From assembly GCA_029953675.1 (NCBI GenBank), contig JAMWBK010000005.1, forward strand, positions 2,604,001 to 2,668,000: a stretch of 64,000 bases of DNA, read 5' to 3'. Under the pieces are notes generated by a model. It saw nothing but the letters and a program-made list of their open reading frames with translations. It did no database searches and had not been told where the DNA came from. The position numbers and the translations under genes were made by a program. Positions 3,740-60,336 of the stretch are shown here, piece by piece. The DNA comes from Rhodosorus marinus CCMP1338. Lineage: Eukaryota; Plantae; Rhodophyta. Positions within the stretch are counted from its first letter, which is position 1; each line of letters opens with the position of its first letter.

Positions 3740-4590
3740 AGGCATAAGAGCTACAAGGTGAACTTAGAGAGGTTTATAGGCCATCCAGCTCAAACCTATT
3801 GCGTGCCACGGGGACCTGTTTACTCCAGCCCACATTGAGCTGGAGATTCAATAGAAGCCACTGTGGATCGGTTGAATTGACGGAAATTGGGTTGGAAAGA
3901 GCTACCAACATGGCAGAATAGAATTAGGTACTAGAATGAACACAAACAACCTCAGTTCAGTTCATGGCTTGTCCCACTCAAGGAGCCTCCATAAAGACTC
4001 GCTCAATGCCCCCTATCTACTCTACGTCTAAAACCGCGATATCTGAGATTCAACGCAAGCTATTCGAGGTTGATTACGTACCGAGTGGAGTAAGCTTGGG
4101 TTCGTGGAAAAGTATGGTCATAACAGAACAGAATGGAGAAGTAGAAGGGAGATGAATCAACCTCAGCTCATTGCCTGTCCCTCTTAAAAATCCGCCCAAC
4201 ACGATCTATTTAGTTTGGGGTCTAAACTGCGATCTCTAAGATACAATGCAGACCAGTCAGGATTGCCTAACGAGTGGAGTGTGTTTGGGGTTGAGAAGAC
4301 CCTTAACCAGGACAGAACAGAATAGAGAGGCAAAAGGGAGATGAATCAACCCCAGCGCATTCCCTGTCCCACTAAAACACCCACCCCAACGCCTTATATC
4401 TAGTCGAGGGTCTTAAAACCTCGATCTCTGAGATTCAATGCAACCAATTCAGGATAGCCCAACAAGTGGAGTGCAAATTTGGGGTCGAGAAGAACAAAAG
4501 CTATGACAGAACAGAAGCGAGAGGTAGGAGGGAGATGAACCTACCATCATCTCATCGCCTGTCCCACTCAAAGCCACCCAAAAAGGGTCG
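3740..4590. repeat. Diverged tandem array, ~190-200 bp unit, about 4 copies
   Basis: GGGAGATGAA..CC..TGTCCC starts at 4147, 4336 and 4530 (weaker copy near 3935). (G/A)AGAT(T/A)CAA occurs at 3843, 4045, 4238 and 4430. GAGTGGAGT and ACAGAACAGAA motifs recur at the same spacing. Confidence 0.85.
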
Positions 4591-11944: not shown

Positions 11945-12934
11945 TTACTCGTTCTTCTCTTCCTGAATATTTTGAGCGAACTCGCTGCAAGAGTATGCCA
12001 CGTTTCCACACAATGCCAATGTCAAACCAGCAAGAAGTGTGGTTCCTCCGGGAAACCCGCCGAGGTAGCTCTGTGGCCACACGATCGTTGCAAGAGACAA
12101 CACCCACGTGAACGCCACCATAGAAACGCAGAGTGTGAACCACTTTCGAGTCTGCGCCACAACGCATCCGAATACACCAGCGAGAAGCTGGAAAACACCA
12201 GCGGTAATCGTCAATTCCGGGTAGACGATCAGCATCGGCTCTTCAACGACAGGCGGGTCGTATGGACCTGGTCCCATGTATGCTCGTACAACGGAACCTC
12301 CAATGATAAAATACAGGCCGCCCAGCGTCAGGTTTATTGCCCACAACAGCAGCCTTTTCTTCGAGTATCCAGATCCTTGCGATTTCCCATCGACTTGATG
12401 TTTCCGGACAACGTTTCCAATCATGAACTGCCCGCCTTGCAGCGCGAAACACCATGAAATACCAGACAAAAGGGCAAAAACCCTGACGCAATCGTACTGT
12501 GGCAAAGTTAAATTATATGCTGGAGGTACTTGACGATCGTTCACGAGATCGTTGATAGGGGCCGCAAGAACCCATACTGTGAACACAAACCATCCCAGAA
12601 CGAACGCCAAAGCCATCCAGGCTGTTGTGATCATCTTGTTCCCAGCTTTCACCAGTAGGAGCGCACCGCCGACCAATACTCCCGCCAGACCAAACAAGAT
12701 CTCACCACAAGCAGACACAAGCAGCAGACTCTGACTGAAAGGTCCTGGCTGGGGATCAGCAAACCGGAAAGCCCTCATCGCGCCCTCGTTCATGACGAGA
12801 TAAGACCACAGAACAAACAAACCAACAGCAGTCAAAAACCCTCTTGAAAGCCCCTTGTTCGACTCCTTCTGAGCCTCAACATCAAGCTCCGCATCCATTG
12901 AGCTCAGCTCAACCTTCTCACTATCCACCGCCAT
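11945..12934 (-). CDS. Uncharacterised 8-TM membrane protein, paralogue A (329 aa, intronless)
   Basis: Long ORF with about 8 hydrophobic segments; motifs YLVMNEGA, GEILFGLAG, LGWFVFTVWVLA, WCFALQGGQF, YPxL are shared with three neighbours. The first ATG is at 12934. Confidence 0.9.
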   Translation of the reverse strand: MAVDSEKVELSSMDAELDVEAQKESNKGLSRGFLTAVGLFVLWSYLVMNEGAMRAFRFADPQPGPFSQSLLLVSACGEILFGLAGVLVGGALLLVKAGNKMITTAWMALAFVLGWFVFTVWVLAAPINDLVNDRQVPPAYNLTLPQYDCVRVFALLSGISWCFALQGGQFMIGNVVRKHQVDGKSQGSGYSKKRLLLWAINLTLGGLYFIIGGSVVRAYMGPGPYDPPVVEEPMLIVYPELTITAGVFQLLAGVFGCVVAQTRKWFTLCVSMVAFTWVLSLATIVWPQSYLGGFPGGTTLLAGLTLALCGNVAYSCSEFAQNIQEEKNE

Positions 12935-13061
12935 CACTCCCTTCTCCCCTTCCCCCCACCCCGTCCCCCCACCAAAAAAACCAGCACACACCACCACAAG
13001 CCCAAAGTCTCCAATTAACTACCAACACCCCATGCACCCCCTCACCTTCCCCTTCCCACAG

Positions 13062-13068: not shown

Positions 13069-16000
13069 CAACCTCAAATATCCATCCCTATCCATCATCC
13101 ACAGACCAAAAAGTCAGCAAATCCAATCTTATAACTCCCAGCAAAATCCCCTCCCTCCCCCCCCCCACATCCTAAAAATGCTTAAGGCAGAATGGTCCAC
13201 AACCTGATCAAAACAAAATTTATTAATAATGATTAATATGTAGTCCAATAGATTCTCTTGGAGAACATTATTGTATGCGGACCGGGGGGGGGAGAATTAT
13301 ATTTCCACTTTTAGGTTTGAAAGAATTTTGCGTATTTCCACCCCCCTCAATATTTTGTAGTATATAATAATTTCAAAAAGGCCGTCGGGGGGTGGGGGGG
13401 GTGGGGTGAGGGGAATTATCTGTTTAGTCCCGAGCCTCCGAAAAACGAATTCGCCCATTCTTATCCATTGCACGGAATCAACTATGTGTGCTGAGGATTA
13501 AAGTCCACACTGGGTAGAGGGCGGGATTGGAATAAAGTCCACCTTGGATAGGACGGGTTTTGTTGGTTGGTGCGGGGAAGCTAGTAATTGGCTAACTCAT
13601 GATTTTGTGAGCATTAATTGGATGAACTAGAAACAATTAATTTGTTTTTAAGTACTCTTATCGGAACTATGGTTAATTAATACGTATATTGAAAACATAT
13701 ACACCAATTGTAGTGACTTCTTAGTATTAAGGGAAAATGAATGGTGGGTCTACATACTAAGCCTCTGCTATTGGCCATAATAGTGTTCCATATGTTTCTA
13801 TTAGTATTTTTTATTAGGTATTTCAATATTTCCTACATGTATCGACATCGCCTCAACCCAAGTTGGAACTTGTCCAACACGGCATGCTAGAACAATTGCC
13901 GTTTATTCTAGCAAGAATCCGATTCTGAAAATTGGAGTCCTCCAATACAGCTCTTGTTTGCCACGTCCAGTCCAAGAAACGCCCCAAAAAATTCTCGGGG
14001 CCCCCACCGATTCCTCGAGCGAGCCTCGTGAAATCAGGCTCGTTTTACTCGCTCCACAATAAAAACCCGGGATAACCATTAAAAATTCCTATCCGACCAG
14101 CCTAATATCGAAAAACCCACCCCCGCTTAAATCCCGTGTCTCCGTCCGCAATGGTCTACGTTCGGATTTCAATATCTGTCCAGGAAAGTGAATCTTTGTA
14201 CTGAATTGTGATAAAAATTAGATCATACATCAGGCCATGTGAAAACTTGATTGATCGTTGATTAGGGGGATCTTTTTGTTCGTTGGACAAGACGAGCTGC
14301 TTTGGTACCTTTGGAGTCCTTAGGCGTTACTTTACAGGGGAAGGAGGAGGTTGAAAGCCGCCCTTTTGGAATTTTTTTTACAACGTACAACGTAAGAGAT
14401 TCCTTAGGAACTGCAAGGGTGAGAGCTTTAACGCGGTTTCAAGATGAACGAGTCTCAAGCAGACGGTTTTTTACCCTTCAGAGGCTAAGACCCCCCAATG
14501 AGGTACGCTGGGAAGGGGGCAGAGGGCGGGCCTCCATAACTAAAGCAGGCTTACAGCGCAGGAGAGTGAATTTAGAACAAGTCTAAGTCAGGATGGCCAC
14601 GGTAACCTGCCGCGCAACCCCTACGACCACCAGCGCGAGAGAGATGTTTTAGGCAAAAGAATCGGAGCTTCGGCCATCTTCACTACTGGGATTTTGGTTG
14701 CGGGGGTCCGCCAACTGCCCATTTGGCTGGTACCCAGCTTTGAAGTAGAAGCCAGAACGATGATAGTTTTCCTTTTACGGTAAAGAAAAAACCTTGCTTT
14801 GGTCTATCTGCCTATACGCTATACTTGTACCGTCTAGGTACAACTATAAGTGTCATCATCTACTCTCGATCTCATCGACTTTTTTAAATGAATTTACAAC
14901 ACTGGCATCCTTTTTTATGATTCTATGGAATGAGAATATATATGACACTTAAATGCTTTTTGCTCATTTTTTTTTGGAATGGCCGTCGTCAGTACACTTT
15001 CAATTTCCGGGCACGGGGCCAAATCAAATAAATTGTTAGTTTTATCATGATCCGTAAATTCTTCTGGACAAATCTGCGCTTTGAGTGGGAATAAGATTGA
15101 TTGAATTCCAATAAAAATAATCCACTACAGCTGAAGTCTGTCCCGAACTTCAACTAAACAATTAAGGATTTGGAGCTTTTTTTGATGATTTTAACTATCG
15201 GGGAGCAGTGTTTTTCGAATTTTATATTTTTTAGCCGCGAAAGACATGGTCCTTGGTATGAAGTCAATTTGCTAATTGTTTTGATAAATTGTTTAGAACA
15301 GAGTTGTCTCGCACATGTACATGTCCATCGCCATCCCCCCAGGCCTTTTTCAAAAAGAATTATTGAGGGGGGAGTTGCTTTCGCACTTCAAATCGTCTGG
15401 GGACAGATTTTCTACCGGGTTCCAAAAACACTTATCGAAACAAACAGAAAACGATTACCTCGTTGATGAGTTTCTTTGATTCTTTATCCGAAATTGGAAA
15501 TCTGTAGGCCGGTATGGAGAGTTCATTTCTGGTTTCCCCGTCGTTCGCACGCCTTCGGCACGCGGGGTTCAGCCCTTGTGGCTTCTCTGCGCTGCCGGGC
15601 TTCGCGCTTCGGAGTAAACGTGGTTGCTCCTTAGCCTTCCTAGAGCGCGGCTGGTCCGGGACCAACCCCATCAAACATTGGGAAGAATCGGCCTCAAAAC
15701 GGCTCGACATCATCATGTGTTTTCGGACTAATGAAACGACCTACCCTAGCACAGCTTGAAGAGGTATATATTGCAATCCTTTAGGTCCCTCGTTTTTGAT
15801 GTACTCGGCATTAGAACGCGAGGCGTATTGCCTCAGGGTATTGACATCTGCTGCTTTCCAATACAAGAACGACCAGAGTGACTTGCGTCCCCCACAAAGG
15901 GATAAACTCTTGAGAGCTTCTCATCTGAGAAACTGTGAATAGAGAGAGCTACTAACAGTAACCCTCTCTGGAGTTTTGTCTGTAGCCTTGAAAATGACGC

Positions 16001-17418
16001 GAGCAGGAATTCAGGTTGTAGTTTGTGCTCGATGTACTAACTGAACATAAGCGAGGGGAATCAAGAACAAAGAAAGACCGGGTGTGGTCAGAAGTTCCTC
16101 ATGACAGGGTTCGACCAAGTGAAATTCTTAACAGCGAAACCGAGATTACAAGGCTGCTGGGGGAGCTGTTCTCGCCAGATATCAGGAACGTCCATTCCCA
16201 CAACGGTTTGAGAAACAAGTTTCCTACTCGGGCACTCCAGGACGTCGGAGCTCTCTCTGGTTCAAACCCACTTTTCACATCGAGAAACCCAAATCAACTA
16301 CTTCCTCGTTTCCGATTCCTACTAAATTACTCCCGAAAAGATAAAAACAGTTTACTCAAAAACCCGCATTTAGATGTATCATATCAAATCAGTTTATAGC
16401 AAAAGAGAAAATCAGTGTCGTAGAAAACATTTTCTACGCGTAAAAATTCCACCTTTCAATAATTATTGTGTGTACGTTGAATAATTAAAGACTTTTTGAT
16501 GCCATCGGCAATCTTTTTGCTCTAGCTCAATAATCTGATGGAAAGTTATTGATTATTCAATGTACAGAATTGAGCGATGAGAAAAGGCAACGAAAAACAA
16601 GTTAAATTCTAAGACTTGATTTAGCTTCTTTTTCCAATATATTCTTGTTTGTTTCACAAAACAAGAACTCTTCTCGCGTTGAAAAGCAAAACTGCTGATT
16701 CTGGACTGCTTTGCTCGTCTGGGAGATTATTATCGGAAGTGGCGAACCGCAGGAGTTTCGCTCGGTTCCTGCATTCTCAACTGCTCCGAGGAGGATGCTC
16801 TGTACAAAAAACATGCAGAATGGACATCCTGAGAGTTTTTAGAGCAGAGCTCCTCCTAGCAGCCTTGTATTCACGGTTTCTCAGATGGAAACTTTACGCG
16901 GTTGCGAGCCGGGTCATCAGGAAAGTAAACCACACCCGAACTTCCTTTGTTCTGGTGAGCTACCGACGCCTGTACCCTCAGACACACCCTCGCACGCTTG
17001 CTCAGTTAGTGAATCGAGCACAAGCTACTAAATGTCTGCCTGCTCACTGCGTTTTCAGGTCTATCCACGTACCGCAGCTACAGTTAAGGCCTGTCGGAAA
17101 AGGTCAGTCGAAGACAACGATCGATCTGAGAGCGTTCTCATGCGTGCAAACTGGATCAGCAGGGTAGCTATGGACTATCGGAAAACGTGATTTAATCTCT
17201 CTTGCGTATACAACTCAACATCCAAATAAATTCAAATCCCCAGGTCCTCCGACGGATACTAGCAGCCTATTGATACAGGTTTTGGGTTCGTTCTCTTCGA
17301 TAGCTCTGTTGTACTCAGCAACTTCGTCAGCAACATTTGCCAACCCTACGAGCGCAGTTCAGCCGGAAAACTGGTTCCTGCAGCAGCTTCGGCAAAGGGT
17401 CGTCTCTGGGGTACATTA

Positions 17419-18405
17419 CTAAGCTTGGAGCTCCTCGTCGAGATCCATTTTGTATTCATGAATAGAGTACGCAACATTCGAGAACGTCACAGCTGAAAGT
17501 CCAGCAAGCAGCGTCGTTCCAACCGCGGCTCCCGCAATGAACGTCTGAGGCCACACAGCACTCGCCAACGTACCCATCCACAGGAATCCAAGCGCCGCAC
17601 CGCACGCTGCAAACCATTCCTTCTTGTACGCAACCACAATGCCCATCAATCCACCGATCAGTTGGAATACTCCAGCCGTAATCGTCAATCCAGGGTAGAT
17701 AATCACCATCGGCTCCGATACCACTGGAGCATCGTACGGTCCGGGTCCAACGTTCGCTCTGATGATCGATCCGCCAATGAGGAAGAAAAGTCCGCTCAGG
17801 GCTAGGTTGCTCGACCACATGGTTAGACGGATCTTCGAGTATCCAACCCCCTTGGACTTTCCTGTCGCCTGCATAGCGCGGATGACATTCCCCACCATGA
17901 ACTGACCTCCCTGAAGCGCAAAGCACCACGTGATACCGGCCAAAAGTCCGTACGTCCTGAAAGCATCGTACTGCGAAAGCGTTAACGGAAGACCCTCCGG
18001 TACCTCTCGAATGTTGGCGATGTTGAAGATCGGCTGTGCCAGTACCCACACGGTAAAGACAAACCAACCCAGAACAAATGCCATAATCAACCATCCAGTC
18101 GTAATCATCTTGCTTCCATATCTGAAAAGTGCGAGCGCGGCTGCGAGAATGACCCCGGCGAGGCCAAAGAGGATCTCACCGCAAGCGGCCACCAGCAACA
18201 GTGTCTGGTTGAATGCCGCGGGCTCGGGGGTACCAACGAGAGTCGACCTGACGGCACCCTCGTTCATAACGAGGTATGACACAAAGGCAAATACTCCTGC
18301 GGTGACTAGGAGTCTTGCATTGCTCCCCAAGTTGCCCTGCTTCTGTTCTTCAATATCGACATCGACGTCGATCTCCGCCTCTCTCGTCTGTTCTTCCAAA
18401 CTCAT
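17419..18405 (-). CDS. Uncharacterised 8-TM membrane protein, paralogue B (328 aa, intronless)
   Basis: Same family motifs; ATG at 18405 (MSLEEQ...). Confidence 0.9.
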   Translation of the reverse strand: MSLEEQTREAEIDVDVDIEEQKQGNLGSNARLLVTAGVFAFVSYLVMNEGAVRSTLVGTPEPAAFNQTLLLVAACGEILFGLAGVILAAALALFRYGSKMITTGWLIMAFVLGWFVFTVWVLAQPIFNIANIREVPEGLPLTLSQYDAFRTYGLLAGITWCFALQGGQFMVGNVIRAMQATGKSKGVGYSKIRLTMWSSNLALSGLFFLIGGSIIRANVGPGPYDAPVVSEPMVIIYPGLTITAGVFQLIGGLMGIVVAYKKEWFAACGAALGFLWMGTLASAVWPQTFIAGAAVGTTLLAGLSAVTFSNVAYSIHEYKMDLDEELQA

Positions 18406-18512
18406 CCTTCTCGTCGTTGCAAAATTGGCCTCTACCCTTCCGTCTCTGTGTCTGTCTGTATGACTGAGTGTCCCAGCCATCACCCACGTCCCAGGATTGG
18501 AAAGGCAGTTCG

Positions 18513-18520
18513 TTTTATAA
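18513..18520 (-). promoter_or_regulatory. TATA-like box, paralogue B
   Basis: TTATAAAA about 110 nt upstream of the ATG. Confidence 0.5.
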
Positions 18521-20575
18521 GCAAGGGTTCGCCTCTCCTTCAACGTACTTGTATCCCGAGATCAGTATCCGGGAGAAAAGCTAGTTGCCTCGGGGTTGAT
18601 CCCGGGTCTACTGCACGCACTTGATGCGCGTACTATGTGATTGCCACCAACAACAATTGAGGTGAATTGGATCGCAATTCGAGTACAGAATTCCGGAGCC
18701 CTGAAAACTCCACAAATGGCTCATGTACAGTGAACGGGCAATAAAATAAAGAAATTCAGCCCCGAAAGTCGGCCGCGGTGCGGGATCGCTTTTTTACACG
18801 AAAACAGCTGACTAACGCCGTATCCATTAACTGACATCTTGCAGGTGTGTACCATTTTGCTGAGAGTTTTGTGGGCGTCCAGGAGTTGCGAAAGTCCTCT
18901 TCCGACCCCAGAATCTAAGTGCTCTTCTATCGCTCTTCCTTCGCCCGTCCAGAAACTAGGATACGTAGCAGGTACTCTGAGGCAAAAGATACATACATTC
19001 TGTACTTGCCGAGACCCTCAAAAACCCTGTTCACCACATGTGGCTGTGCAGCCACACAGAAAACGAGAAAAAGGGTGGAAAAACGTACTGGAGAATGTAT
19101 TCTGTTCCTTACTAATTCTATTCACTAAATTATCTATTAATAGATTTACTTATGATACAACAGATATATACAGGATGTAGTCCCGGAAAGGTATTTTATA
19201 TTTGTACAATGATTAACTTCATAATCGACACCGGATAGAAAAAATCTGATTCGACCGTTGACGTCTCATTAGCCTTCTGGGTTGGCTTAATAGATGTAGA
19301 ATTGAAATACAATCTAAATAAACTTTCTACTCCAAAACCTGTGCTCAACCTCGATGAGCGAAAGCATATCTGTCCTATTAAAAACATATAAGATTTGAGT
19401 TATTTAGAACACGTGTATTTTTTTCATTCGACTGATTATCCCTGAATTTGGAAATTTGTGATCGCGAAGGAGAAACTGTTCGTATACATATATGTATTTT
19501 TATATTCTATAAATATTGCAATTTTTGCGTTTGCGAATTAATCATTGAAAAAAGCCACTCGAAAAAGCAGTGCAGAATAGGACAAAACATTACAAAAAAA
19601 ATTATATATATTGGACCTGGGGCCTGACGTTTACCATTAATTCTTCAACTACTGCTGTTGCAAGCTGAGTATTCTAAGTTTTGGAAATGGGCGTGACCGT
19701 TTCTACCCTGTCGGTGTGGACGAGGAAGGAGTTACGTTTAGGGAAATGAATTCCCCATCCTGCTGCCCCGGTAATATAAGGGGAGAACATTTCCCATTTT
19801 CCCACGCTACGTAAAGGACTTCTTTCCAATCCCCCAAGCTTCGGCATTGATGCGTGCTCCCACCAGAAGCAAATCCGATTCTCAAAAATGGGAATCATGC
19901 ATGTTGATGACTCTGCTTGACAGCTGTCACATGATCTCGAGCACCTTTACGACTGATGGGACTTTCTCGATATCCCGTGTCACACTGAGGACATTGTCAT
20001 CCACCAAGGACACAACTTTTCTCTCCAAAACATAGAAAGTCCAGCATGACTGTGGACGTCCTCAACCTCTCTCGCCATGATTGGAGGCGAATCAAGCACA
20101 GTCTTCGTACAAGCGTGCCTTATCCGGAGAATCTCGCCAGACCAAACGTCGTTATGCACGCTCGTCTCTGAGAGGGTCTGGAGACGCCCACCAGCGGCAA
20201 ACTTCCGCTATTGGGGCTTCCAGTTTGCTTCAGATTGGAATAAGTGTAAACTTATGCAAACAAAACAGCAGATGACTTAAAAGGCCCGTATTGCTAGGGC
20301 ATTGGGAACTGCGTCAATAAAATCTGTCCCTTTAGTCAACCGAGCAACATTAGACAGTACCAACCTGCGGTGGATAAACCGGGATTTCTTGAGGGCGTGA
20401 TTAGTGGAAATCGATCGTAACAATGACACCTCTGTGCTAAGATTCGGGACGGTGTCAGATCGGGACTTCAGCTCCAGTGACTTTTTGTTTTAGTAAAGTT
20501 TGATACAAGTTTCTTCGAAATTAGATCTTCTAGTGTGATCATTACAGTTGTACATTAAGAACTTGGGACACTTGT

Positions 20576-21562
20576 CTAAGCTTGGAGCTCCTCGTCGAGA
20601 TCCATTTTGTATTCATGAATAGAGTACGCAACATTCGAGAACGTCACAGCTGAAAGTCCAGCAAGCAGCGTCGTTCCAACCGCGGCTCCCGCAATGAACG
20701 TCTGAGGCCACACAGCACTCGCCAACGTACCCATCCACAGGAATCCAAGCGCCGCACCGCACGCTGCAAACCATTCCTTCTTGTACGCAACCACAATGCC
20801 CATCAATCCACCGATCAGTTGGAATACTCCAGCCGTAATCGTCAATCCAGGGTAGATAATCACCATCGGCTCCGATACCACTGGAGCATCGTACGGTCCG
20901 GGTCCAACGTTCGCTCTGATGATCGATCCGCCAATGAGGAAGAAAAGTCCGCTCAGGGCTAGGTTGCTCGACCACATGGTCAGACGGATCTTCGAGTATC
21001 CAACCCCCTTGGACTTTCCTGTCGCCTGCATAGCGCGGATGACATTCCCCACCATGAACTGACCTCCCTGAAGCGCAAAGCACCACGTGATACCGGCCAA
21101 AAGTCCGTACGTCCTGAAAGCATCGTACTGCGAAAGCGTTAACGGAAGACCCTCCGGTACCTCTCGAATGTTGGCGATGTTGAAGATCGGCTGTGCCAGT
21201 ACCCACACGGTAAAGACAAACCAACCCAGAACAAATGCCATAATCAACCATCCAGTCGTAATCATCTTGCTTCCATATCTGAAAAGTGCGAGCGCGGCTG
21301 CGAGAATGACCCCGGCGAGGCCAAAGAGGATCTCACCGCAAGCGGCCACCAGCAACAGTGTCTGGTTGAATGCCGCGGGCTCGGGGGTACCAACGAGAGT
21401 CGACCTGACGGCACCCTCGTTCATAACGAGGTATGACACAAAGGCAAATACTCCTGCGGTGACTAGGAGTCTTGCATTGCTCCCCAAGTTGCCCTGCTTC
21501 TGTTCTTCAATATCGACATCGACGTCGATCTCCGCCTCTCTCGTCTGTTCTTCCAAACTCAT
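20576..21562 (-). CDS. Uncharacterised 8-TM membrane protein, paralogue C (protein identical to B)
   Basis: The CDS matches B except at one synonymous site (17824 T vs 20981 C on the + strand). Confidence 0.9.
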   Translation of the reverse strand: MSLEEQTREAEIDVDVDIEEQKQGNLGSNARLLVTAGVFAFVSYLVMNEGAVRSTLVGTPEPAAFNQTLLLVAACGEILFGLAGVILAAALALFRYGSKMITTGWLIMAFVLGWFVFTVWVLAQPIFNIANIREVPEGLPLTLSQYDAFRTYGLLAGITWCFALQGGQFMVGNVIRAMQATGKSKGVGYSKIRLTMWSSNLALSGLFFLIGGSIIRANVGPGPYDAPVVSEPMVIIYPGLTITAGVFQLIGGLMGIVVAYKKEWFAACGAALGFLWMGTLASAVWPQTFIAGAAVGTTLLAGLSAVTFSNVAYSIHEYKMDLDEELQA

Positions 21563-21691
21563 CCTTCTCGTCGTTGCAAATTTATCAATCTTTAAATCGT
21601 TCTTCAAACTCTGGAGTCCTCGCTTTCAGTGTGTTGTGTGCTTGGTAATAGTCCTTGCTATCAGCCATTGATCCTGATCGAGGACGATCCA

Positions 21692-23201: not shown

Positions 23202-24196
23202 TTCCTATTCACACATTCCCTATAGTTTCATAGCCTTGCCCCTACGCTTTTGACATCAACCTAACCAACTCAGCGGGACCCGGATGTCCCTGGCCACCTA
23301 AACGACGGCATCCACAGTTTCCTGACTAATTTCTTTTGAAATTGTAGGAAATCTTTTGTCCCCATAAACAATATTTCTTTGAATTTTAGGCTGGGCAAAG
23401 TTTTGCCTTGTTAAAAATATCTCTCCCCCAAAAAGGGCGCTTCGTCATTGGCATCGATGCAGACAACGGGACAGGTGGGGGTTACGTTAGTCTGGCAACG
23501 GATTTCTTTTCTTTTTTCTACCGCCTCTATCTTTCCCACCTGAACTATTGCCATAGAACCTGAGATACATTTGCGCTGAAGTAGCTTTCCCGACGTGGTC
23601 GGTAGAGATAGTTGCCCCATTTCAACAGCTTCGACGAGCTTCTGATGCAGCAGGGTCGTTCTCTCTCCATCTCTTCGTGATATGCAAGGATCTAATTCAA
23701 TTTCCCTTGGTGTGCACGTCTTAGCTTTATTTAGCAGACGATCCGTGGTTGACAATCAAGTTCGAGGTGGTTTGGAAAGACTTGCCTCTGAATTTAGTTT
23801 CTTGTCCCCGTAGCGCTATTGGGATCCCATTGTCCAAATTCCGTGACTACCTACGGCAGCCGAACAAAAAACACTCTTAAGGTGATATGCAAGGAAAAGA
23901 AAATCCTGTCTACGGGTCACCCACGGGGATGACCCTGACGTGTGGGTCCTACACAGTGAGCAAGGACACTGTTGGTACAACGATCCACACCCGGAAGAAG
24001 CGAATTCTATGTAACAAGCGGGAAACATGTCATTCTCGTGATCTTTGAAAAGAACGCGTGGAATCCGTGGGCTTTGAGGTAGCGTGCGTACGGCAGATTT
24101 TAGGAGTTGGGTCTAGAAATGTACCAATCGATCCTTCATTATTTATTTTAGAGATCAGCATTCGGAACACAGCTTCTTCTCAAGGCAAGGAGAAAT

Positions 24197-25162
24197 TCAG
24201 CTCTCCGCCAGGAGTTCCTGCTCGTATTCGCTGGCAGAATATGCAACGTTGCCATGGATCATGGTGCACAGGCCTGCAAGGAGCGTTGTCGCTGGAGCGA
24301 TACCTCCCAAGAACGCTGGAGTCCACACGATCGTGGCGAGACTGAAGAGGTACGAGAATGCCACGAACACAGTAACGGTCTTGAACATTCTCCTCATTAT
24401 CGCCGCTGAAACGGCAAAGGTTCCGAACAGGAATTGAATAATTCCAGCCGCAATGGTGAGACCCGGGTACACGATGAATATCGGCGGGAACGCTTGAACA
24501 GGCTCAAGTGGACCTGGTCCGTAAGCAACGCTTGCTACAGAGCCAGCAATCACAAACACAATTCCACTCAGGGAAATGTTAAGCGACCACATGATCAATC
24601 TGATCTGAGCGTATTTTTCTCCCCTCGTCTTTCCTTGATCCTGATGACCTCGAATGACATTTCCAACCATGAACTGGCCCCCTTGCAGAGCGAAGCACCA
24701 GAAAATACCTCCGAAAAGGCTCATCGTTCTCAGTAGGTCGAACTGCTGAATCGTCAGGGGTTCTGGTGCCGTCCGAACGTTCACGAGGTTCCAGATGGGG
24801 AACGCGAGTACCCATACGCTGAACACAAACCATCCGAGAACAAAGGCCAGCCCCATCCAGCTTAGAGTCACGAACTTATTGCCGAAACGGAATAGAAGCA
24901 GTGCTATTCCCATAAGAAAGCCAGCGAGCCCAAAGAGGACTTCACCGGAGGAGGCCACGAGCCTCAGAGTCTCGGAGAAGGCTGCCGGTTCTGGCGTCGC
25001 GACTTGGGTCGAACGAATTGCTCCTTCGTTCATCACGAGGTAGGAGTAAAGAGTGAAGACAGAAATGGCAACCAGGAACCTTCTGGTCCAAATCGTGCCC
25101 CGCTGCACTTTCTGGTCTTCAATGTCATCGATGATGTCGGTTTCTCTCCCAGCGACGTCCAT
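24197..25162 (-). CDS. Uncharacterised 8-TM membrane protein, paralogue D (321 aa, intronless)
   Basis: YLVMNEGAIR, GEVLFGLAG, LGWFVFSVWVLA, FWCFALQGGQFMVGNVIR, YPGL motifs. Confidence 0.9.
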   Translation of the reverse strand: MDVAGRETDIIDDIEDQKVQRGTIWTRRFLVAISVFTLYSYLVMNEGAIRSTQVATPEPAAFSETLRLVASSGEVLFGLAGFLMGIALLLFRFGNKFVTLSWMGLAFVLGWFVFSVWVLAFPIWNLVNVRTAPEPLTIQQFDLLRTMSLFGGIFWCFALQGGQFMVGNVIRGHQDQGKTRGEKYAQIRLIMWSLNISLSGIVFVIAGSVASVAYGPGPLEPVQAFPPIFIVYPGLTIAAGIIQFLFGTFAVSAAIMRRMFKTVTVFVAFSYLFSLATIVWTPAFLGGIAPATTLLAGLCTMIHGNVAYSASEYEQELLAES

Positions 25163-25315
25163 TTTCCTTGGATTTCAGCCTCAACTTCTTGTTGGTTCTG
25201 CAGTGATAGTTGTACTCTGCTTATGCTACTTGCTACCTCACTACGTCTTCTCAAAGTCTGCCGTATGACTGTAGTGTGGAGTTGAACGCGATGGGCACAA
25301 TCCCATAGACAATCG

Positions 25316-25325
25316 GTTTATATAG
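25316..25325 (-). promoter_or_regulatory. TATA-like box, paralogue D
   Basis: CTATATAAAC about 155 nt upstream of the ATG. Confidence 0.55.
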
Positions 25326-28300
25326 ACTGACTCGTAAGGTGGACTCTAGGTGCGAAGAGCAGGCGGCGGATGGACGAATCGATTGTTGTGGACACGAGAA
25401 AAAGCAAAAGGCTACTGAAGGAGACCCCCCACCTTGACCCAAGCGCAGAATTTGCAGGCTCCTTTCCACAGTAGCTACATCCCAAAGCCACCTTTTTCCG
25501 TGACCTTTTCTCTGCACAAATCGCATTGCAAACATGCTTTTTCTCTTTCAGGCCAAAGAACGGTGGTGTTGGTAGTGGCCCATCGAATAACCTTTCTAAA
25601 GGGTTGAAGATTCACATTCGGGGCTTCCCTCAGCCCGTCAATCCGCGCTCCTCAAACTTAACCTCCTTCTCCAACACCTCTCACATCAAAGAAAATTCAT
25701 CAAACAAATCCTACGATTTGATAATCCCGGAGAAAAAAAACGACGATGCGGACTTGTGAGAAGAAATTCCTTTGGACTTCTAGTCAATCCAAAGATCCTA
25801 ATATCACTACGGTTTCTCCCTTTTACTCCCCCAGGACTCGTCCAGGACTCTTCGCCTTTCAACCCACAGTATTGCCCAAGTCGTTCCGACACCCCGCTCC
25901 CCATTGAAAACACGCAGTGTCAGGAAAAAAACAAAAAGATGAAAATAATTAGTCCCTTTTTTTTCCTTTTTCTCAAGATCCTTGTAGATCTGAACGGAAA
26001 AATTTCAACGAAGGCTCTCAATGCGACAACTTGAATACACAAAAACTTCGACCATTCTGGCCAATATTATTAATGTATTGAAAACATCAGCAAAAAGAGT
26101 CCTCGACAATGAACAACCCCCCTCCAAACCATGAACGAAGAATTACAACACTACACAATTACCCCCCTCCCATTTTCAACTAACTACTGTTTATTTTAAG
26201 ATAGGAAAATATTTTAGAACATTACTTGCAAAATCTCTGCTTGTGTTGAACCCATAGCTGAATTGTTTCTGTGGCAATCGGAATTTTTGAATGGGGATGG
26301 GAAGGGGTAACCAAGAGGGATAAAAGTCCTGGCTCAGAATTGTAGCCGTTCATGAAAAAATCGAAACCTGATTGGATTTTTTTTAAGTCACCCAGTTCTT
26401 GATTGGTCTGTTAAATTCTATAGGGACCCAAACAGCTAAATACTTATCATAAAACATGTTTCGTACCCTTCGTTTCGTTTTATCTTTCAAACGATTCTTC
26501 TTTCTTCAGTAATATCATGAAACATCATAATTTCTACTCTTTCTTGTCGCGGTCGTTGAGGAAAACAAGAAAAAAACACAAGGGGGGAGAGAAAATCGAA
26601 TATTAGATCACGTGGCCATAGTTTCAGGGAGCCCGTAGAAGACAATGTCAACAATACGACATTCCTGTCTAAAATATACCAAAAAAGTAGAAATGATTTT
26701 GTTTGGGACGGTGAAATTGGTTGGGGCGGTATGTGGGCGGAATGAAGGCAGGTGAGTGACAGTTTTAGCCTGATCTTCAATACTTGTTTAATAGCGAAGA
26801 GGATGAACAGTGAAGGTAGTGAAGGCTTGCTATGTGCCAATCGTGGGGACTTCTGCAGGCGATGGGCCCCTTTTTCTAAAACGTAGGCGGGGCCAAATCC
26901 CGTAGCAGTGAATGAATCCTTTTTTTGTGGTCGTGCACGGTGCTTGACTTTGCAAATCCCTCAGACATGGCTGTGCAGACACAGCGCTGAGGATGTAATT
27001 GTATAAAGGAGTTTTCGTAGGGTTTCGACGGCCATGGCGTCGAAAACGAGTCGAAAAGAAGGTTTTGTTTTAAGTTTTTGCTTGTACGTCCAGTGGGTGT
27101 TTTCAGTTTTTTTTGAGAGCGTTTTGGCCAGTTTTTTGATCGACAGGGTGTTGTAACAAGAGCAATGACACGTGAGCATTTACGACAATGCCAAACCCGA
27201 CGTTTTGGACTTCTGTACCGGAAAGGCATGGTGATTTTGATAGGGTTTTCCTCGTTCGGGGTTCTACTGAACGGATTGCTACTAGCAGCTGCGCTAAGAA
27301 TTGGAGACTTTAAGCAGAGAATCGTGCATTTCAAGATGGTTTTACAGTTAATTTCTCTTCTTGCTTCGTCCTTTGAACCTCAAAAACTCGACCTTCATGA
27401 GACGCGGTTAACCTTCAGGAGCCTCACTTAAGCAGCCGTTTCAAATTGTTTGCTCTGTACGACGGACGTGAGGTGCTCTTCTCTGCCTGTAAAATTGAGA
27501 GGGCCACAAAAGAACGTCGATAGTTGACGCCAAGTCAAGCAAGTGGCATCAGTTACGACAAATGAGCGGTTCTGATTGGCGTTTGTCATGCATGGTCTCA
27601 CGCATCTTTAAACACATGGAATGCATATTGGGACACGGCAATGTTTCTGTCCACAGATCAAGAGAATTATCGAGTTGCAAACGGTTTCACATGTGGGCAG
27701 CGTGCGGGCAACATGCACAATTCACCTTTTAAGAACGCTTTCTTCGACTTTCCCAGGGCCATCCGTGACTTAGACGTTGGGGCGGGAAAGCGAAACCCCT
27801 TAGGCAGTTCCACACGCGCCAAATGATTGGCTTCATCTCGTCGTCTGGGTTCTGATAGTTTCTGAAGTTATTGGAGAACGTGGAAATCCGGGCGTAGGCT
27901 ATTCGGCTGCCTCCGCAAGGAGCCTGAATTCTTCACGGAATTCTTCTCAGATAGACTCGACGTAAAGCCTGATCATATCTAGGAAATTCTATCAAATTCT
28001 GGTGGAGTTTGCCTACTGATTTCCAGAGCGAAATGCATTAATTCGTCAGCATGTGGGGGGGGACGTCTCGCCCATATCTAGCGGGTATTGAGCATTGTAC
28101 ATCCTATTACTACCCGAAGCGAATGTTTTCCGAAGACACCAGGATACGTCGAAACCGGTCTAGAGTCAGTTCTGGTTGATGACCGCCGAATATGCACAAG
28201 GGGTTTTGGGACGATTGTAGTATGGCAACGAACCTTTTTCCGGAGCTGGAGTAGCGACACAGGTGCAGCAACCGTAGTCGAACAAAGCGGGAAGATGGGA

Positions 28301-48699: not shown

Positions 48700-48896
48700 G
48701 ACGCCCTGGGATCAGCCACGTACCTCAGTGCGATTGATCTCCGGAGTGGGTATTGGCAATTGCGTGTGAAGACCGTTTTAGGTATGTCCTCGCCCGTGAA
48801 GACCGTTTTAGGTATGTCCTCGTCCTTCACCCGCAATTGCCAATACCCACTCCGGAGATCAATCGCACTGAGGTATGTGGCTGATCCCAGGGCGTC
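48700..48896. repeat. 65-bp inverted repeat (1 mismatch) enclosing a 27-bp tandem duplication
   Basis: Arms at 48700-48764 and 48832-48896; GTGAAGACCGTTTTAGGTATGTCCTCG at 48766 and 48796. Confidence 0.95.
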
Positions 48897-57740: not shown

Positions 57741-58806
57741 AAACCACTATGCCACAGCCAGAGAGATTTCCTCAGAACATCTTCTCATCAGAATGTCCCA
57801 TCTTTCTGTCCCGTCCCGCAAATGGCATCGGGACAATCACCTTCCGTTCGCAGCCAACAAACAAGAAGATGCTTACAATTATGATCTTGGTTGAAATTTT
57901 ATACTCTAATTCATGAATACAAAGTAGCCAATGAAAACGCTCTTTCTTGTCCTTTCTTCTAAATATTATCCCCAAAAAATGTTGCGCACTTTATTTGCAA
58001 GTGATGGAAATATATAAGGTTATTTCAACAAAATAAATATTGAAAAATAAAACTAAAAACAATATACAAGCATCACGAAAAAAACTTGATGAAAAGAAGG
58101 AACTCCACCCCCACCCCCCTCTCCCTGCAGCATATCTATTTGTGTCTCAATATGTTACCAATAGTTTCAAATATACTACTTCTGTTTTGAAACATGAGCC
58201 ACATCCTTAGGGTAGGGAAAGGGGAAAACACATTCACAACAATTATGGACCAAAAAATTTACCCAAATATTACAAAAGAATCTAAATCAAATCCTAAACA
58301 GATCATAATTTACGTAACAAGAACTAGAAACCTGCTTATTTGTCGCGAAAACCACAGCTTATTACCTAAAATACAAATTCGTCCAACATTTACGACTACT
58401 AGGGACACGTGGTAATTCCTCATCGAATCAAAATTACATCCTTTCCATTTATGATATATATTCACCATTTTGGATCCTGTATAATATAAAAATCACATGC
58501 ATTCCGAAAAATGAAATATTTCTTCCTTTTTTCCACTTCAAGTTTTTTCAAATATGTATTTAATAAATAATATGGGTGCAAAAGGTAGGAAATTTCTATG
58601 TTTTTAAGTTATAAAAGCGCCTTTGGCTTTTTTTGTTTGGAAATTCGAGGGTTTTGGAGGGTGTATAGATTTTTTTACTGTGTTTCTAATGTGCTGGGAA
58701 TTTTCTATTGTCAGGGGTATAAATAGAGCATGGATTGTACTTGGGATGGAATGGTTGGGAAGGTGTAGAAGGGAACGAGGAGGTCTCATGAGGACTGAGG
58801 AGGACT

Positions 58807-59966
58807 GAGGAGGTTTGAGGAGGTTTGAGGAGGTTTGAGGAGGTTTGAGGAGGTTTGAGGAGGTTTGAGGAGGTTTGAGGAGGTTTGAGGAGGTTTGAGG
58901 AGGTTTGAGGAGGTTTGAGGAGGTTTGAGGAGGTTTGAGGAGGTTTGAGGAGGTTTGAGGAGGTTTGAGGAGGTTTGAGGAGGTTTGAGGAGGTTTGAGG
59001 AGGTTTGAGGAGGTTTGAGGAGGTTTGAGGAGGTTTGAGGAGGTTTGAGGAGGTTTGAGGAGGTTTGAGGAGGTTTGAGGAGGTTTGAGGAGGTTTGAGG
59101 AGGTTTGAGGAGGTTTGAGGAGGTTTGAGGAGGTTTGAGGAGGTTTGAGGAGGTTTGAGGAGGTTTGAGGAGGTTTGAGGAGGTTTGAGGAGGTTTGAGG
59201 AGGTTTGAGGAGGTTTGAGGAGGTTTGAGGAGGTTTGAGGAGGTTTGAGGAGGTTTGAGGAGGTTTGAGGAGGTTTGAGGAGGTTTGAGGAGGTTTGAGG
59301 AGGTTTGAGGAGGTTTGAGGAGGTTTGAGGAGGTTTGAGGAGGTTTGAGGAGGTTTGAGGAGGTTTGAGGAGGTTTGAGGAGGTTTGAGGAGGTTTGAGG
59401 AGGTTTGAGGAGGTTTGAGGAGGTTTGAGGAGGTTTGAGGAGGTTTGAGGAGGTTTGAGGAGGTTTGAGGAGGTTTGAGGAGGTTTGAGGAGGTTTGAGG
59501 AGGTTTGAGGAGGTTTGAGGAGGTTTGAGGAGGTTTGAGGAGGTTTGAGGAGGTTTGAGGAGGTTTGAGGAGGTTTGAGGAGGTTTGAGGAGGTTTGAGG
59601 AGGTTTGAGGAGGTTTGAGGAGGTTTGAGGAGGTTTGAGGAGGTTTGAGGAGGTTTGAGGAGGTTTGAGGAGGTTTGAGGAGGTTTGAGGAGGTTTGAGG
59701 AGGTTTGAGGAGGTTTGAGGAGGTTTGAGGAGGTTTGAGGAGGTTTGAGGAGGTTTGAGGAGGTTTGAGGAGGTTTGAGGAGGTTTGAGGAGGTTTGAGG
59801 AGGTTTGAGGAGGTTTGAGGAGGTTTGAGGAGGTTTGAGGAGGTTTGAGGAGGTTTGAGGAGGTTTGAGGAGGTTTGAGGAGGTTTGAGGAGGTTTGAGG
59901 AGGTTTGAGGAGGTTTGAGGAGGTTTGAGGAGGTTTGAGGAGGTTTGAGGAGGTTTGAGGAGGTTT
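58807..59966. repeat. Perfect minisatellite (GAGGAGGTTT) x116
   Basis: Uninterrupted 10-bp unit over 1160 bp, read directly. Confidence 0.99.
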
Positions 59967-60150
59967 GAGAAGGTTTGAGAAGGTTTGAGGAGGGTTGGGG
60001 AGGATTGGAGAGGATTGGGGAGGGTTGTGGAGGGTTGTGGAGGGTTGTGGAGGGTTGTGGAGGGTTGTGGAGGGTTGTGGAGGGTTGTGGAGGGTTGTGG
60101 AGGGGTTGAGGAGGGGTTGAGGAGGGTTGTGGGAGGTTGAGGAGGTGTGG
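59967..60150. repeat. Degenerate satellite edge, including (GGAGGGTTGT) x~8
   Basis: Units shift GAGAAGGTTT > GGAGAGGATT > GGAGGGTTGT > GAGGAGGGGTT. Confidence 0.9.
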
Positions 60151-60336
60151 AGAAGTACTGAGTACGTTTTTTTTGTGTGGAGGAGTGGGGAGTGGGGGTT
60201 AGAGTTGCTTTGAAGCATTGGACGAAGCAGGAAGGACCAGGGAACAGCAAAAGGAAGGGGGTTTGGTTTAGTTGTTGTGGGCGTGGACAGGTTGAAAACG
60301 TATTTGTTGAAGTTTCGGGTTGGATGATGAGCGAGA

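Follow-up and report, generated by a model that had tools for sequence, protein, structure and literature searches.

Near-complete identity confined to the coding sequences of two tandem paralogues in Rhodosorus marinus, with gene conversion as the probable cause

Results

A four-gene array of intronless paralogues

We analysed a window of 64,000 nucleotides from contig JAMWBK010000005.1 (positions 2,604,001 to 2,668,000, assembly GCA_029953675.1) of the red alga Rhodosorus marinus CCMP1338. This part of the nuclear genome carries an array of four paralogues, A-B-C-D, all on the minus strand and all intronless, with no other gene called between the array members (Table 1). The array lies in the interval bounded by a PMSR and a GT2 gene. 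B and C are in direct orientation 3157 bp apart, a spacing that resembles that of A and D. Each of the four genes is one uninterrupted ORF, so intron loss offers no contrast between a parent and a copy. The R. marinus genome as a whole has 8392 genes and 24,821 introns, about three introns per gene (PMC10250338).

In the tree the B/C lineage is sister to the A clade, and the split between A and B/C occurred long before the divergence of strains. Relative to B/C, both A and D are saturated (dS >1.7 or undefined). GC3 is 0.61 in B/C, the highest of the four genes, 0.60 in D and 0.55 in A. There are exactly two copies of the B/C protein in the assembly. A search of 5.8 billion proteins yielded no B/C orthologue, with matches only to A-type, D-type and more distant members, and two scans of metagenome contigs revealed no relative; orthologues were found for A and D only, as transcripts. 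A candidate parallel pair (P0007) was discarded because its two contigs come from different samples.

The B/C protein belongs to an unnamed eukaryotic family of predicted 8-helix membrane proteins, and its fold is predicted with confidence (pLDDT 93). Five polar residues are all but invariant: E49, R53, E77, Q168 and R193. Foldseek searches of the PDB with a weak (pLDDT 72) and the strong (pLDDT 93) model returned generic helical-bundle noise (TM ≤0.32; best match of the strong model ≤0.31), and a sequence profile search of the PDB gave no match. Pfam at threshold had no match for A, B, D, the distant relatives or any of the 46 members of the family alignment; Neurensin matches and one Tetraspanin match were sub-threshold noise. 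An internal 4+4 helix duplication was unsupported (hhalign probability 0.7%).

Table 1. Features of the B/C locus and the surrounding array, in window coordinates.
Feature	Position	Strand	Remarks
Paralogue A	11945..12934	-	called gene; 329 aa, 56% aa identity to B/C; A clade sister to B/C in tree
Identity tract, copy 1	17419..18423	-	gene B coding sequence, stop codon and 18-nt leader; 1004/1005 equal to 20576-21580
Gene B coding sequence	17419..18405	-	called gene in GCA_029953675.1; 328 aa, intronless, predicted 8-helix membrane protein
Sole B/C difference	17824..17824	-	partner 20981; codon 194, third position; direct comparison
B-C spacer	18424..20575		2152 bp, B upstream and C downstream region; unique sequence, no called gene, no Pfam or Rfam match
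TATA-like box of B, TATAAAA	18513..18519	-	114 nt upstream of B ATG, outside shared tract; consensus match only
Identity tract, copy 2	20576..21580	-	gene C coding sequence, stop codon and 18-nt leader; direct comparison
Gene C coding sequence	20576..21562	-	called gene in GCA_029953675.1; 328 aa, protein identical to B
TATA-like box of C, TATATAA	21694..21700	-	138 nt upstream of C ATG, outside shared tract; consensus match only
Paralogue D	24197..25162	-	321 aa, 52% aa identity to B/C; orthologous transcript L003 calibrates flank divergence

Identity between B and C

Direct comparison of the two 1005-bp tract copies found 1004 of 1005 positions equal, an identity beyond chance, and the tract is thus a genuine repeat in the assembly. 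The single mismatch is T at 17824 against C at 20981 in plus-strand coordinates; in the gene sense, on the minus strand, it changes the third position of codon 194 from CTA in B to CTG in C and leaves Leu194 unaltered. The two 328-aa proteins are therefore identical, with dN 0 and dS 0.0042 between the coding sequences. In the gene sense the 3' end of the tract is the final base of the TAG stop codon, counted as the first base in plus-strand coordinates, and its 5' end lies 18 nt upstream of the ATG (at 18405 in B and 21562 in C). The first-pass annotation had reported 1005 bp equal but for one synonymous site, running from the stop codon to 18 nt before the ATG; the count and the site proved exact and both limits were reproduced. 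With only one variable site, there are no mosaic tracts to analyse.

Near-identical paralogues are at risk of over-homogenisation in assembly pipelines of the kind used for this genome. Both copies could then be real while their true differences were erased by NextDenovo self-correction and by Pilon with multi-mapping 100-bp reads. The base-level identity of B and C does rest on an ONT assembly (6 kb size selection, NextDenovo) polished three times by Pilon with bowtie2-mapped 100-bp paired reads (PMC10250338). However, one difference survived, both ORFs are intact, and reads of at least 6 kb span both copies and the unique spacer, so that the two-copy structure is secure. Polishing also blurs only copies that are already near-identical; it could not generate the contrast between coding sequence and flank, and this contrast, with its interpretation, would stand in any case. 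We consider it unlikely that the identity is a partial artefact of this type.

The flanks of B and C

On ungapped extension past either end of the tract, matching drops immediately to about chance. Gapped local alignments of the B and C flanks (1.5 kb, 600 nt and 400 nt) scored no better than shuffled sequence, or marginally better, in line with the earlier description of promoters and 3' flanks that differ. The 5' and 3' flanks of the pair are as unrelated as those of A and D, which split anciently. The sole hint of a graded edge is found in the first 12 nt past the stop codon, where 7/12 positions match (binomial p ~0.02). The sequence after the stop is TAATGTACCCC in B and ACAAGTGTCCC in C, and an A-run is present in neither. 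At the tract borders we saw no target-site duplication or direct repeat, and junction microhomology was not evident. Ten ORFs in the spacers of the array had no Pfam match, and an Rfam search across 9-28 kb had none. An inverted repeat at 15922-17063 lies ~350 bp beyond the B stop codon and does not abut the identity tract.

These flanks bear directly on how the pair arose. The direct orientation and the short spacing of 3157 bp would suit unequal crossing-over that recently duplicated the gene in tandem and was followed by no homogenisation, but such an event would co-duplicate spacer or flank, and nothing beyond the 1005 bp is shared. It had been argued on first pass that a duplication of this kind would copy the flanks too, and the argument holds: with unrelated flanks, we regard the explanation as effectively excluded. 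Haplotype duplication was rejected likewise, since nothing outside the 1005 bp is shared, as was a transposon-borne or captured copy, there being no terminal repeats at the tract ends, no mobile-element features abutting them and no Pfam domain in the spacer ORFs.

A TATA-like box lies upstream of B and of C, at -114 and -138, and one is found upstream of D at a comparable distance (-162). The boxes would imply leaders of roughly 80-110 nt for B and C. A motif shared by the B and D promoters, CAGTCATAC..GCAGAC, ~48 nt past each TATA-like box, was rejected: 5/200 shuffles over 12 comparisons, not significant after correction.

Calibration of flank divergence

The rate at which flanks diverge was calibrated by comparing D with L003, the transcript of its orthologue in a different Rhodosorus strain. 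L003 has a 3' UTR of ~76 nt and reaches at least 433 nt beyond the ATG on the 5' side. At a dS of 0.39 between the two, their UTRs align end to end, with 78.5% identity in the 5' UTR and 85% in the 3' UTR. In ORFs upstream of D the frame is not conserved against L003, so this stretch is a non-coding leader or promoter. Since UTRs remain alignable at dS 0.39, flanks duplicated together with coding sequences that now stand at dS 0.004 would be expected to be ~99% identical. The B and C flanks are unalignable, so either the loci are much older than the strain split or their flanks were never homologous. Judged by the sequences, the flanks of B and C look far older than the coding sequences that they enclose.

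The same transcript speaks to a copy made through RNA. A reverse-transcribed mRNA of one gene may have inserted as a retrogene, or may have recombined with the adjacent paralogue by homology and so replaced the coding sequence there. The lack of introns throughout the array, against a genomic average of about three per gene, agrees with such an origin. A retrogene would be expected to carry UTR sequence of the kind seen in L003, but the identity ends at the stop codon; neither copy is followed by an A-run, target-site duplications are absent, and the 18 nt of shared leader fall short of the length suggested by the TATA-like boxes. Replacement by a cDNA donor fits better in one respect, as homology limited to the coding sequence would trim non-homologous UTR tails and give the observed limits. 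As the array genes are intronless, a cDNA donor leaves no distinguishing mark and is inseparable from a DNA donor; nothing favours RNA over DNA, and it is simpler to assume DNA from the same or the sister chromatid, at a distance of 3 kb. We judge a cDNA-mediated event, in either form, to be quite improbable.

Discussion

Probable gene conversion between old tandem paralogues

We consider the pattern to be probably the result of interlocus gene conversion between the old tandem paralogues B and C, either confined to the coding region or retained only there. Both copies are members of a pre-existing array of homologues, identically oriented and spaced much as A and D are, which is the substrate that conversion requires, and their synonymous divergence (dS 0.0042) is far below that of their flanks, which resemble shuffled sequence. 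In such a scheme, B and C would be long-established members of the tandem array, and non-reciprocal (ectopic) conversion would have homogenised their coding sequences in the very recent past, probably more than once. Conversion needs homology, of which there is none in the non-coding flanks, so tracts would stay within the coding block, and selection at the protein level would keep that block from eroding inward. Identity would then cease with the stop codon on one side and a few nt before the ATG on the other, leaving one protein encoded at two loci with unrelated upstream and downstream sequence. The age that this requires of both loci, and with it that of the B-C duplication, is suggested indirectly by their flanks. 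The classic sign of concerted evolution, paralogues within one genome resembling each other more than orthologues in different genomes do, presupposes an orthologue, and the searches turned up none for B/C in another strain or species. That GC3 is highest in B/C is weakly consistent with GC-biased conversion.

Some observations tell against conversion. The flanks hold barely any sign of similarity fading with distance, apart from the 7/12 trace past the stop. Conversion tracts normally end inside homology, so full identity up to either edge implies ends that were identical beforehand, which points to ongoing conversion or to an original duplication unit with the same limits. A sharp boundary on both sides, with essentially no gradient, would follow from a recent non-homologous copy of the 1005-bp piece alone, by an MMBIR/FoSTeS-like template switch or by end-joining capture, inserted 2.15 kb away in direct orientation at a target with no paralogue. 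Such a copy would agree with the protein's copy number of exactly two in the assembly, and with the lack of a known B/C orthologue elsewhere that would preclude a young duplication. However, one random breakpoint must coincide with the final base of the stop codon and the other with a point 18 nt before the ATG, and the piece must have inserted within the array, oriented like its neighbours, with a TATA-like box upstream at a D-like distance; neither junction microhomology nor a target-site duplication is evident. An equivalent scenario was rejected on the same grounds for the KRTAP1 genes (bioRxiv 10.1101/282418), and we hold it to be unlikely here. It is very unlikely that the razor-sharp limits reflect a process that copies or replaces ORFs precisely, for example RNA-templated repair with a translated or trimmed mRNA fragment, possibly recurrent in R. 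marinus. If it did operate, many coding-only identical pairs with unrelated flanks would be expected across the 31-Mb genome.

The first-pass annotation had left the choice between gene conversion and a cDNA copy. Of the two, conversion is the better supported, by the array, the dS of 0.004, the unalignable flanks and the KRTAP1 precedent, and retroposition is disfavoured by the lack of a shared UTR, an A-run and a target-site duplication. The accompanying proposal of one protein under two promoters is true at the level of sequence: the proteins are identical and the upstream DNA is unrelated.

Interpreted as conversion, the pair would be a clean, almost textbook case of coding-restricted concerted evolution in the Stylonematophyceae, red algae in which nuclear gene conversion has hardly been described. 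It also carries a caution for annotators and phylogeneticists, as B and C could pass for a duplication of very recent date although their loci are probably old. With one protein behind two unrelated upstream regions, UTR-specific expression assays can measure dosage or differential regulation. The 8-helix family, whose fold is predicted confidently and for which no related structure has been solved, may merit study in itself.

Comparison with known systems

Like processed retrogenes, the pair includes an intronless extra copy with unrelated upstream sequence; unlike them it has no shared 3' UTR, poly(A) tract or target-site duplication, the parent is itself intronless and the copy lies inside its own paralogue array. 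The same or nearly the same protein is encoded between divergent flanks, and kept so by gene conversion, in yeast TEF1/TEF2, human HSPA1A/HSPA1B and HBA1/HBA2, and bacterial tufA/tufB. Those genes are highly expressed and well characterised, whereas B and C are uncharacterised. In tandem arrays of Trypanosoma brucei, duplicates are likewise homogenised by gene conversion, and copies whose UTRs or coding-sequence boundaries have been rearranged depart from the behaviour of the other array members (Jackson 2007, PMC1855330). Conversion there often extends into the UTRs, and copies tend to be spared homogenisation if their UTRs are unique (PMC1855330); in R. marinus, by contrast, homogenisation affects precisely the pair that has unique flanks.

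The pattern has a published precedent in the KRTAP1 repeats of mammals: concerted evolution affects their coding regions, whereas divergence of the flanks is normal, which was explained by gene conversion and selection, and reverse transcription was rejected since the UTRs are not carried along (Zhou et al., bioRxiv 10.1101/282418). Both systems consist of tandem single-exon paralogues with abrupt boundaries at the ends of the coding sequence. KRTAP1 copies retain considerable variation within a genome, whereas B and C differ at one site, and the KRTAP1 pattern was shown across many species through orthologous flanks, whereas B/C is known from one genome. The products, a mammalian keratin-associated protein and a red-algal membrane protein, are unrelated. 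Identity of coding sequences between unrelated flanks is a known and ordinary footprint of gene conversion, and B and C are probably a new instance of it.

Organization of the array

[quoted passage not shown] Each is one uninterrupted ORF on the minus strand, with the near-identical B and C in the middle. The public annotation calls no further gene between them and places a PMSR gene beyond A and a GT2 glycosyltransferase gene beyond D. We found no Pfam match for the spacer ORFs and no Rfam match in the array region. At the amino-acid level B/C are 56% identical to A and 52% identical to D; at the nucleotide level, identity to these genes (∼65-66%) is confined to the conserved core.

Coordinates of the array genes, the tract common to B and C, and other elements in the window
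Feature	Position	Strand	Size
Gene A	11945-12934	-	329 aa
Gene B	17419-18405	-	328 aa
Gene C	20576-21562	-	328 aa
Gene D	24197-25162	-	321 aa
Shared tract, B	17419-18423		1005 bp
Shared tract, C	20576-21580		1005 bp
G-rich tract upstream of A	12935-12997
Complementary partner (inverted repeat I4)	13389-13412
Imperfect inverted repeat	15922-16197, 16818-17063		arms ∼240-275 bp
CAGTCATAC..GCAGAC, upstream of B	∼18450-18475
CAGTCATAC..GCAGAC, upstream of D	∼25270-25285
10-bp repeat	58777-60146		1.37 kb
ORFs containing the 10-bp repeat	58604-60250	-
189-bp-period repeat	4014-4580		2.3 copies
Near-palindrome	48700-48896		∼200 bp
Tandem duplication	48766-48822		30 bp

The sequence directly 5' of A differs from its equivalents at B, C and D: it is a G-rich tract of unusual type (GGGGT/GGGGA runs in the gene sense), with a complementary partner ∼430 bp away. 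A long imperfect inverted repeat ∼350 bp downstream of the B stop codon has arms that are 72-75% complementary, with a 20-nt core at 95%; Pfam matches were absent from its ORFs, and a degenerate foldback or TIR element is one possibility. Elsewhere, ∼137 copies of the 10-bp unit GAGGAGGTTT, 98% identical, lie within long ORFs, the copies of the 189-bp-period tandem repeat are ∼74-77% identical, and the near-palindrome (81% self-complementary) contains a perfect tandem duplication.

A predicted membrane-protein family

Searches with the A-D family gave no Pfam family above threshold and no PDB sequence match. A word-indexed search returned just six relatives, each from a stylonematophycean red alga; an exhaustive profile search gave 138 cluster representatives at E ≤ 1e-3, similar in length (about 310-350 aa) and including unnamed proteins of Chara braunii (GBG79227.1) and the amoebozoan Stenamoeba. 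An AlphaFold2 model (m9b571b0d45be) built with 46 aligned relatives is confident (pLDDT 93, pTM 0.89) and predicts eight long helices together with an amphipathic helix at the N terminus and a short hairpin. We found no evidence of an internal 4+4 duplication. Foldseek found no relative of the model in the PDB (best TM ≤ 0.31). Based on this model, the array is predicted to encode an unnamed, structurally orphan eukaryotic family of 8-helix membrane proteins. The nearly invariant polar residues E49, R53, E77, Q168 and R193 lie in or near helices, a hint that the proteins may be transporters, channels or membrane enzymes.

Identity of B and C ends with the coding block

Compared base by base, the two copies of the shared tract have a single mismatch (17824 T, 20981 C) at the third position of codon 194 (CTA vs CTG, Leu either way), and the two proteins are identical (dS = 0.0042, dN = 0). 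In the gene sense the tract starts 18 nt 5' of the ATG (at 18405 in B and 21562 in C) and ends at the final base of the TAG stop codon. The first-pass annotation had reported this near-identity, its one synonymous difference and both limits exactly. The protein was found at these two loci only, and it is alone in its 90% cluster.

The same annotation held that the promoters and 3' flanks differ, and alignment agrees. Ungapped extension past either end drops immediately to about chance matching. Gapped local alignment over 1.5 kb scored 36 for the 5' flanks (shuffle mean 32.5) and 42 for the 3' flanks (shuffle mean 32.2), the latter being one AT-rich low-complexity match. Under stricter scoring (600 nt 5', 400 nt 3') the flanks of B and C are as unrelated as those of A and D. 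The sole sign of a graded edge is 7/12 matches in the first 12 nt past the stop (p ∼0.02). The CAGTCATAC..GCAGAC element (approximate coordinates) is common to the upstream regions of B and D and absent from C, ∼46-50 nt downstream of TATA-like boxes; as a B-D promoter element it was rejected, its score being reached in 5/200 shuffles and not significant after 12 comparisons.

Ages of the genes and their flanks

In the ML tree, B/C are sister to a clade of A and its orthologue P0003 from the MMETSP Rhodosorus data (support 100/98). The split is far deeper than strain divergence (A stem 0.35, tips 0.03-0.06), so the B/C lineage is old; dS among A, B/C and D is saturated. No B/C orthologue was found in searchable data. 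The MMETSP Rhodosorus transcriptomes contain A and D orthologues and no B/C (17419-21580 compared with P0003 and P0004), and the B/C branch from the common node is longer than that of A (0.55 vs 0.38). Perhaps the lineage is not expressed, has been lost elsewhere or evolves fast.

L003, a transcript of the D orthologue from another Rhodosorus strain, aligns to the D locus over its full length (1472 nt), with dS 0.39 and dN 0.037 in the coding sequence and UTR identities of 78.5% (5') and 85% (3'). Non-coding flanks here thus diverge at roughly the synonymous rate, and flanks co-duplicated with coding sequence at dS 0.004 should be nearly identical. Because the B and C flanks have no detectable similarity, they must, by this sequence calibration, long predate the divergence of the strains or never have been homologous; it is from the flanks only that we infer the age of the B-C duplication. 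Divergence between the L003 strain and CCMP1338 (dS 0.39 in gene D, ∼20% in UTRs; 24122-25608 compared) is high for strains of one species, and the two, both 'Rhodosorus marinus', may therefore be different species.

Origin of the pair

As the first-pass annotation had argued, a simple tandem duplication can be excluded: unequal crossing-over would have copied the spacer too. The annotation's suggestion of a cDNA-mediated copy fared less well: a processed retrogene is contradicted by identity that stops at the stop codon, though the L003 transcript carries ∼76 nt of 3' UTR with an A-run at its end, and by a common leader of only 18 nt, while L003 extends 433 nt or more 5' of its ATG. Both copies lack a trailing A-run and flanking target-site duplications, and each has its own TATA-like box (consensus matches only) at -114 (B) or -138 (C), comparable to -162 in D. 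Non-homologous copying of the coding segment alone, by template switch or end-joining capture, is possible but improbable because of the coincidences required: two random breakpoints exactly at the coding-sequence edges, and insertion into the array with the orientation preserved and a usable promoter lying upstream. Polishing of the assembly (ONT with NextDenovo, 3x Pilon with 100-bp reads; PMC10250338) could have hidden a few true differences; neither the coding/flank contrast nor the two-copy structure could arise in this way, as reads of at least 6 kb bridge the two copies together with the unique spacer.

Interlocus gene conversion between two old array members, the other route first proposed, explains all features, including unrelated flanks beside so low a dS, and is probably the correct explanation. 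Conversion requires homology, and that of B and C is limited to the coding block, which selection on the protein would keep from eroding; repeated conversion would hold synonymous sites identical as well. A cDNA could have been the donor; with intronless genes it would leave the same result as a DNA donor. For identity to be complete at both edges, the ends must have matched already when the last event took place: either conversion is ongoing, or the original duplication unit had the same limits. GC3 is highest in B/C (0.61, against 0.55 in A and 0.60 in D), which is weakly consistent with biased conversion. The B/C pair, of modest interest, adds an example of an already known phenomenon from a little-studied lineage; the T. 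brucei arrays (PMC1855330) are a looser analogue.
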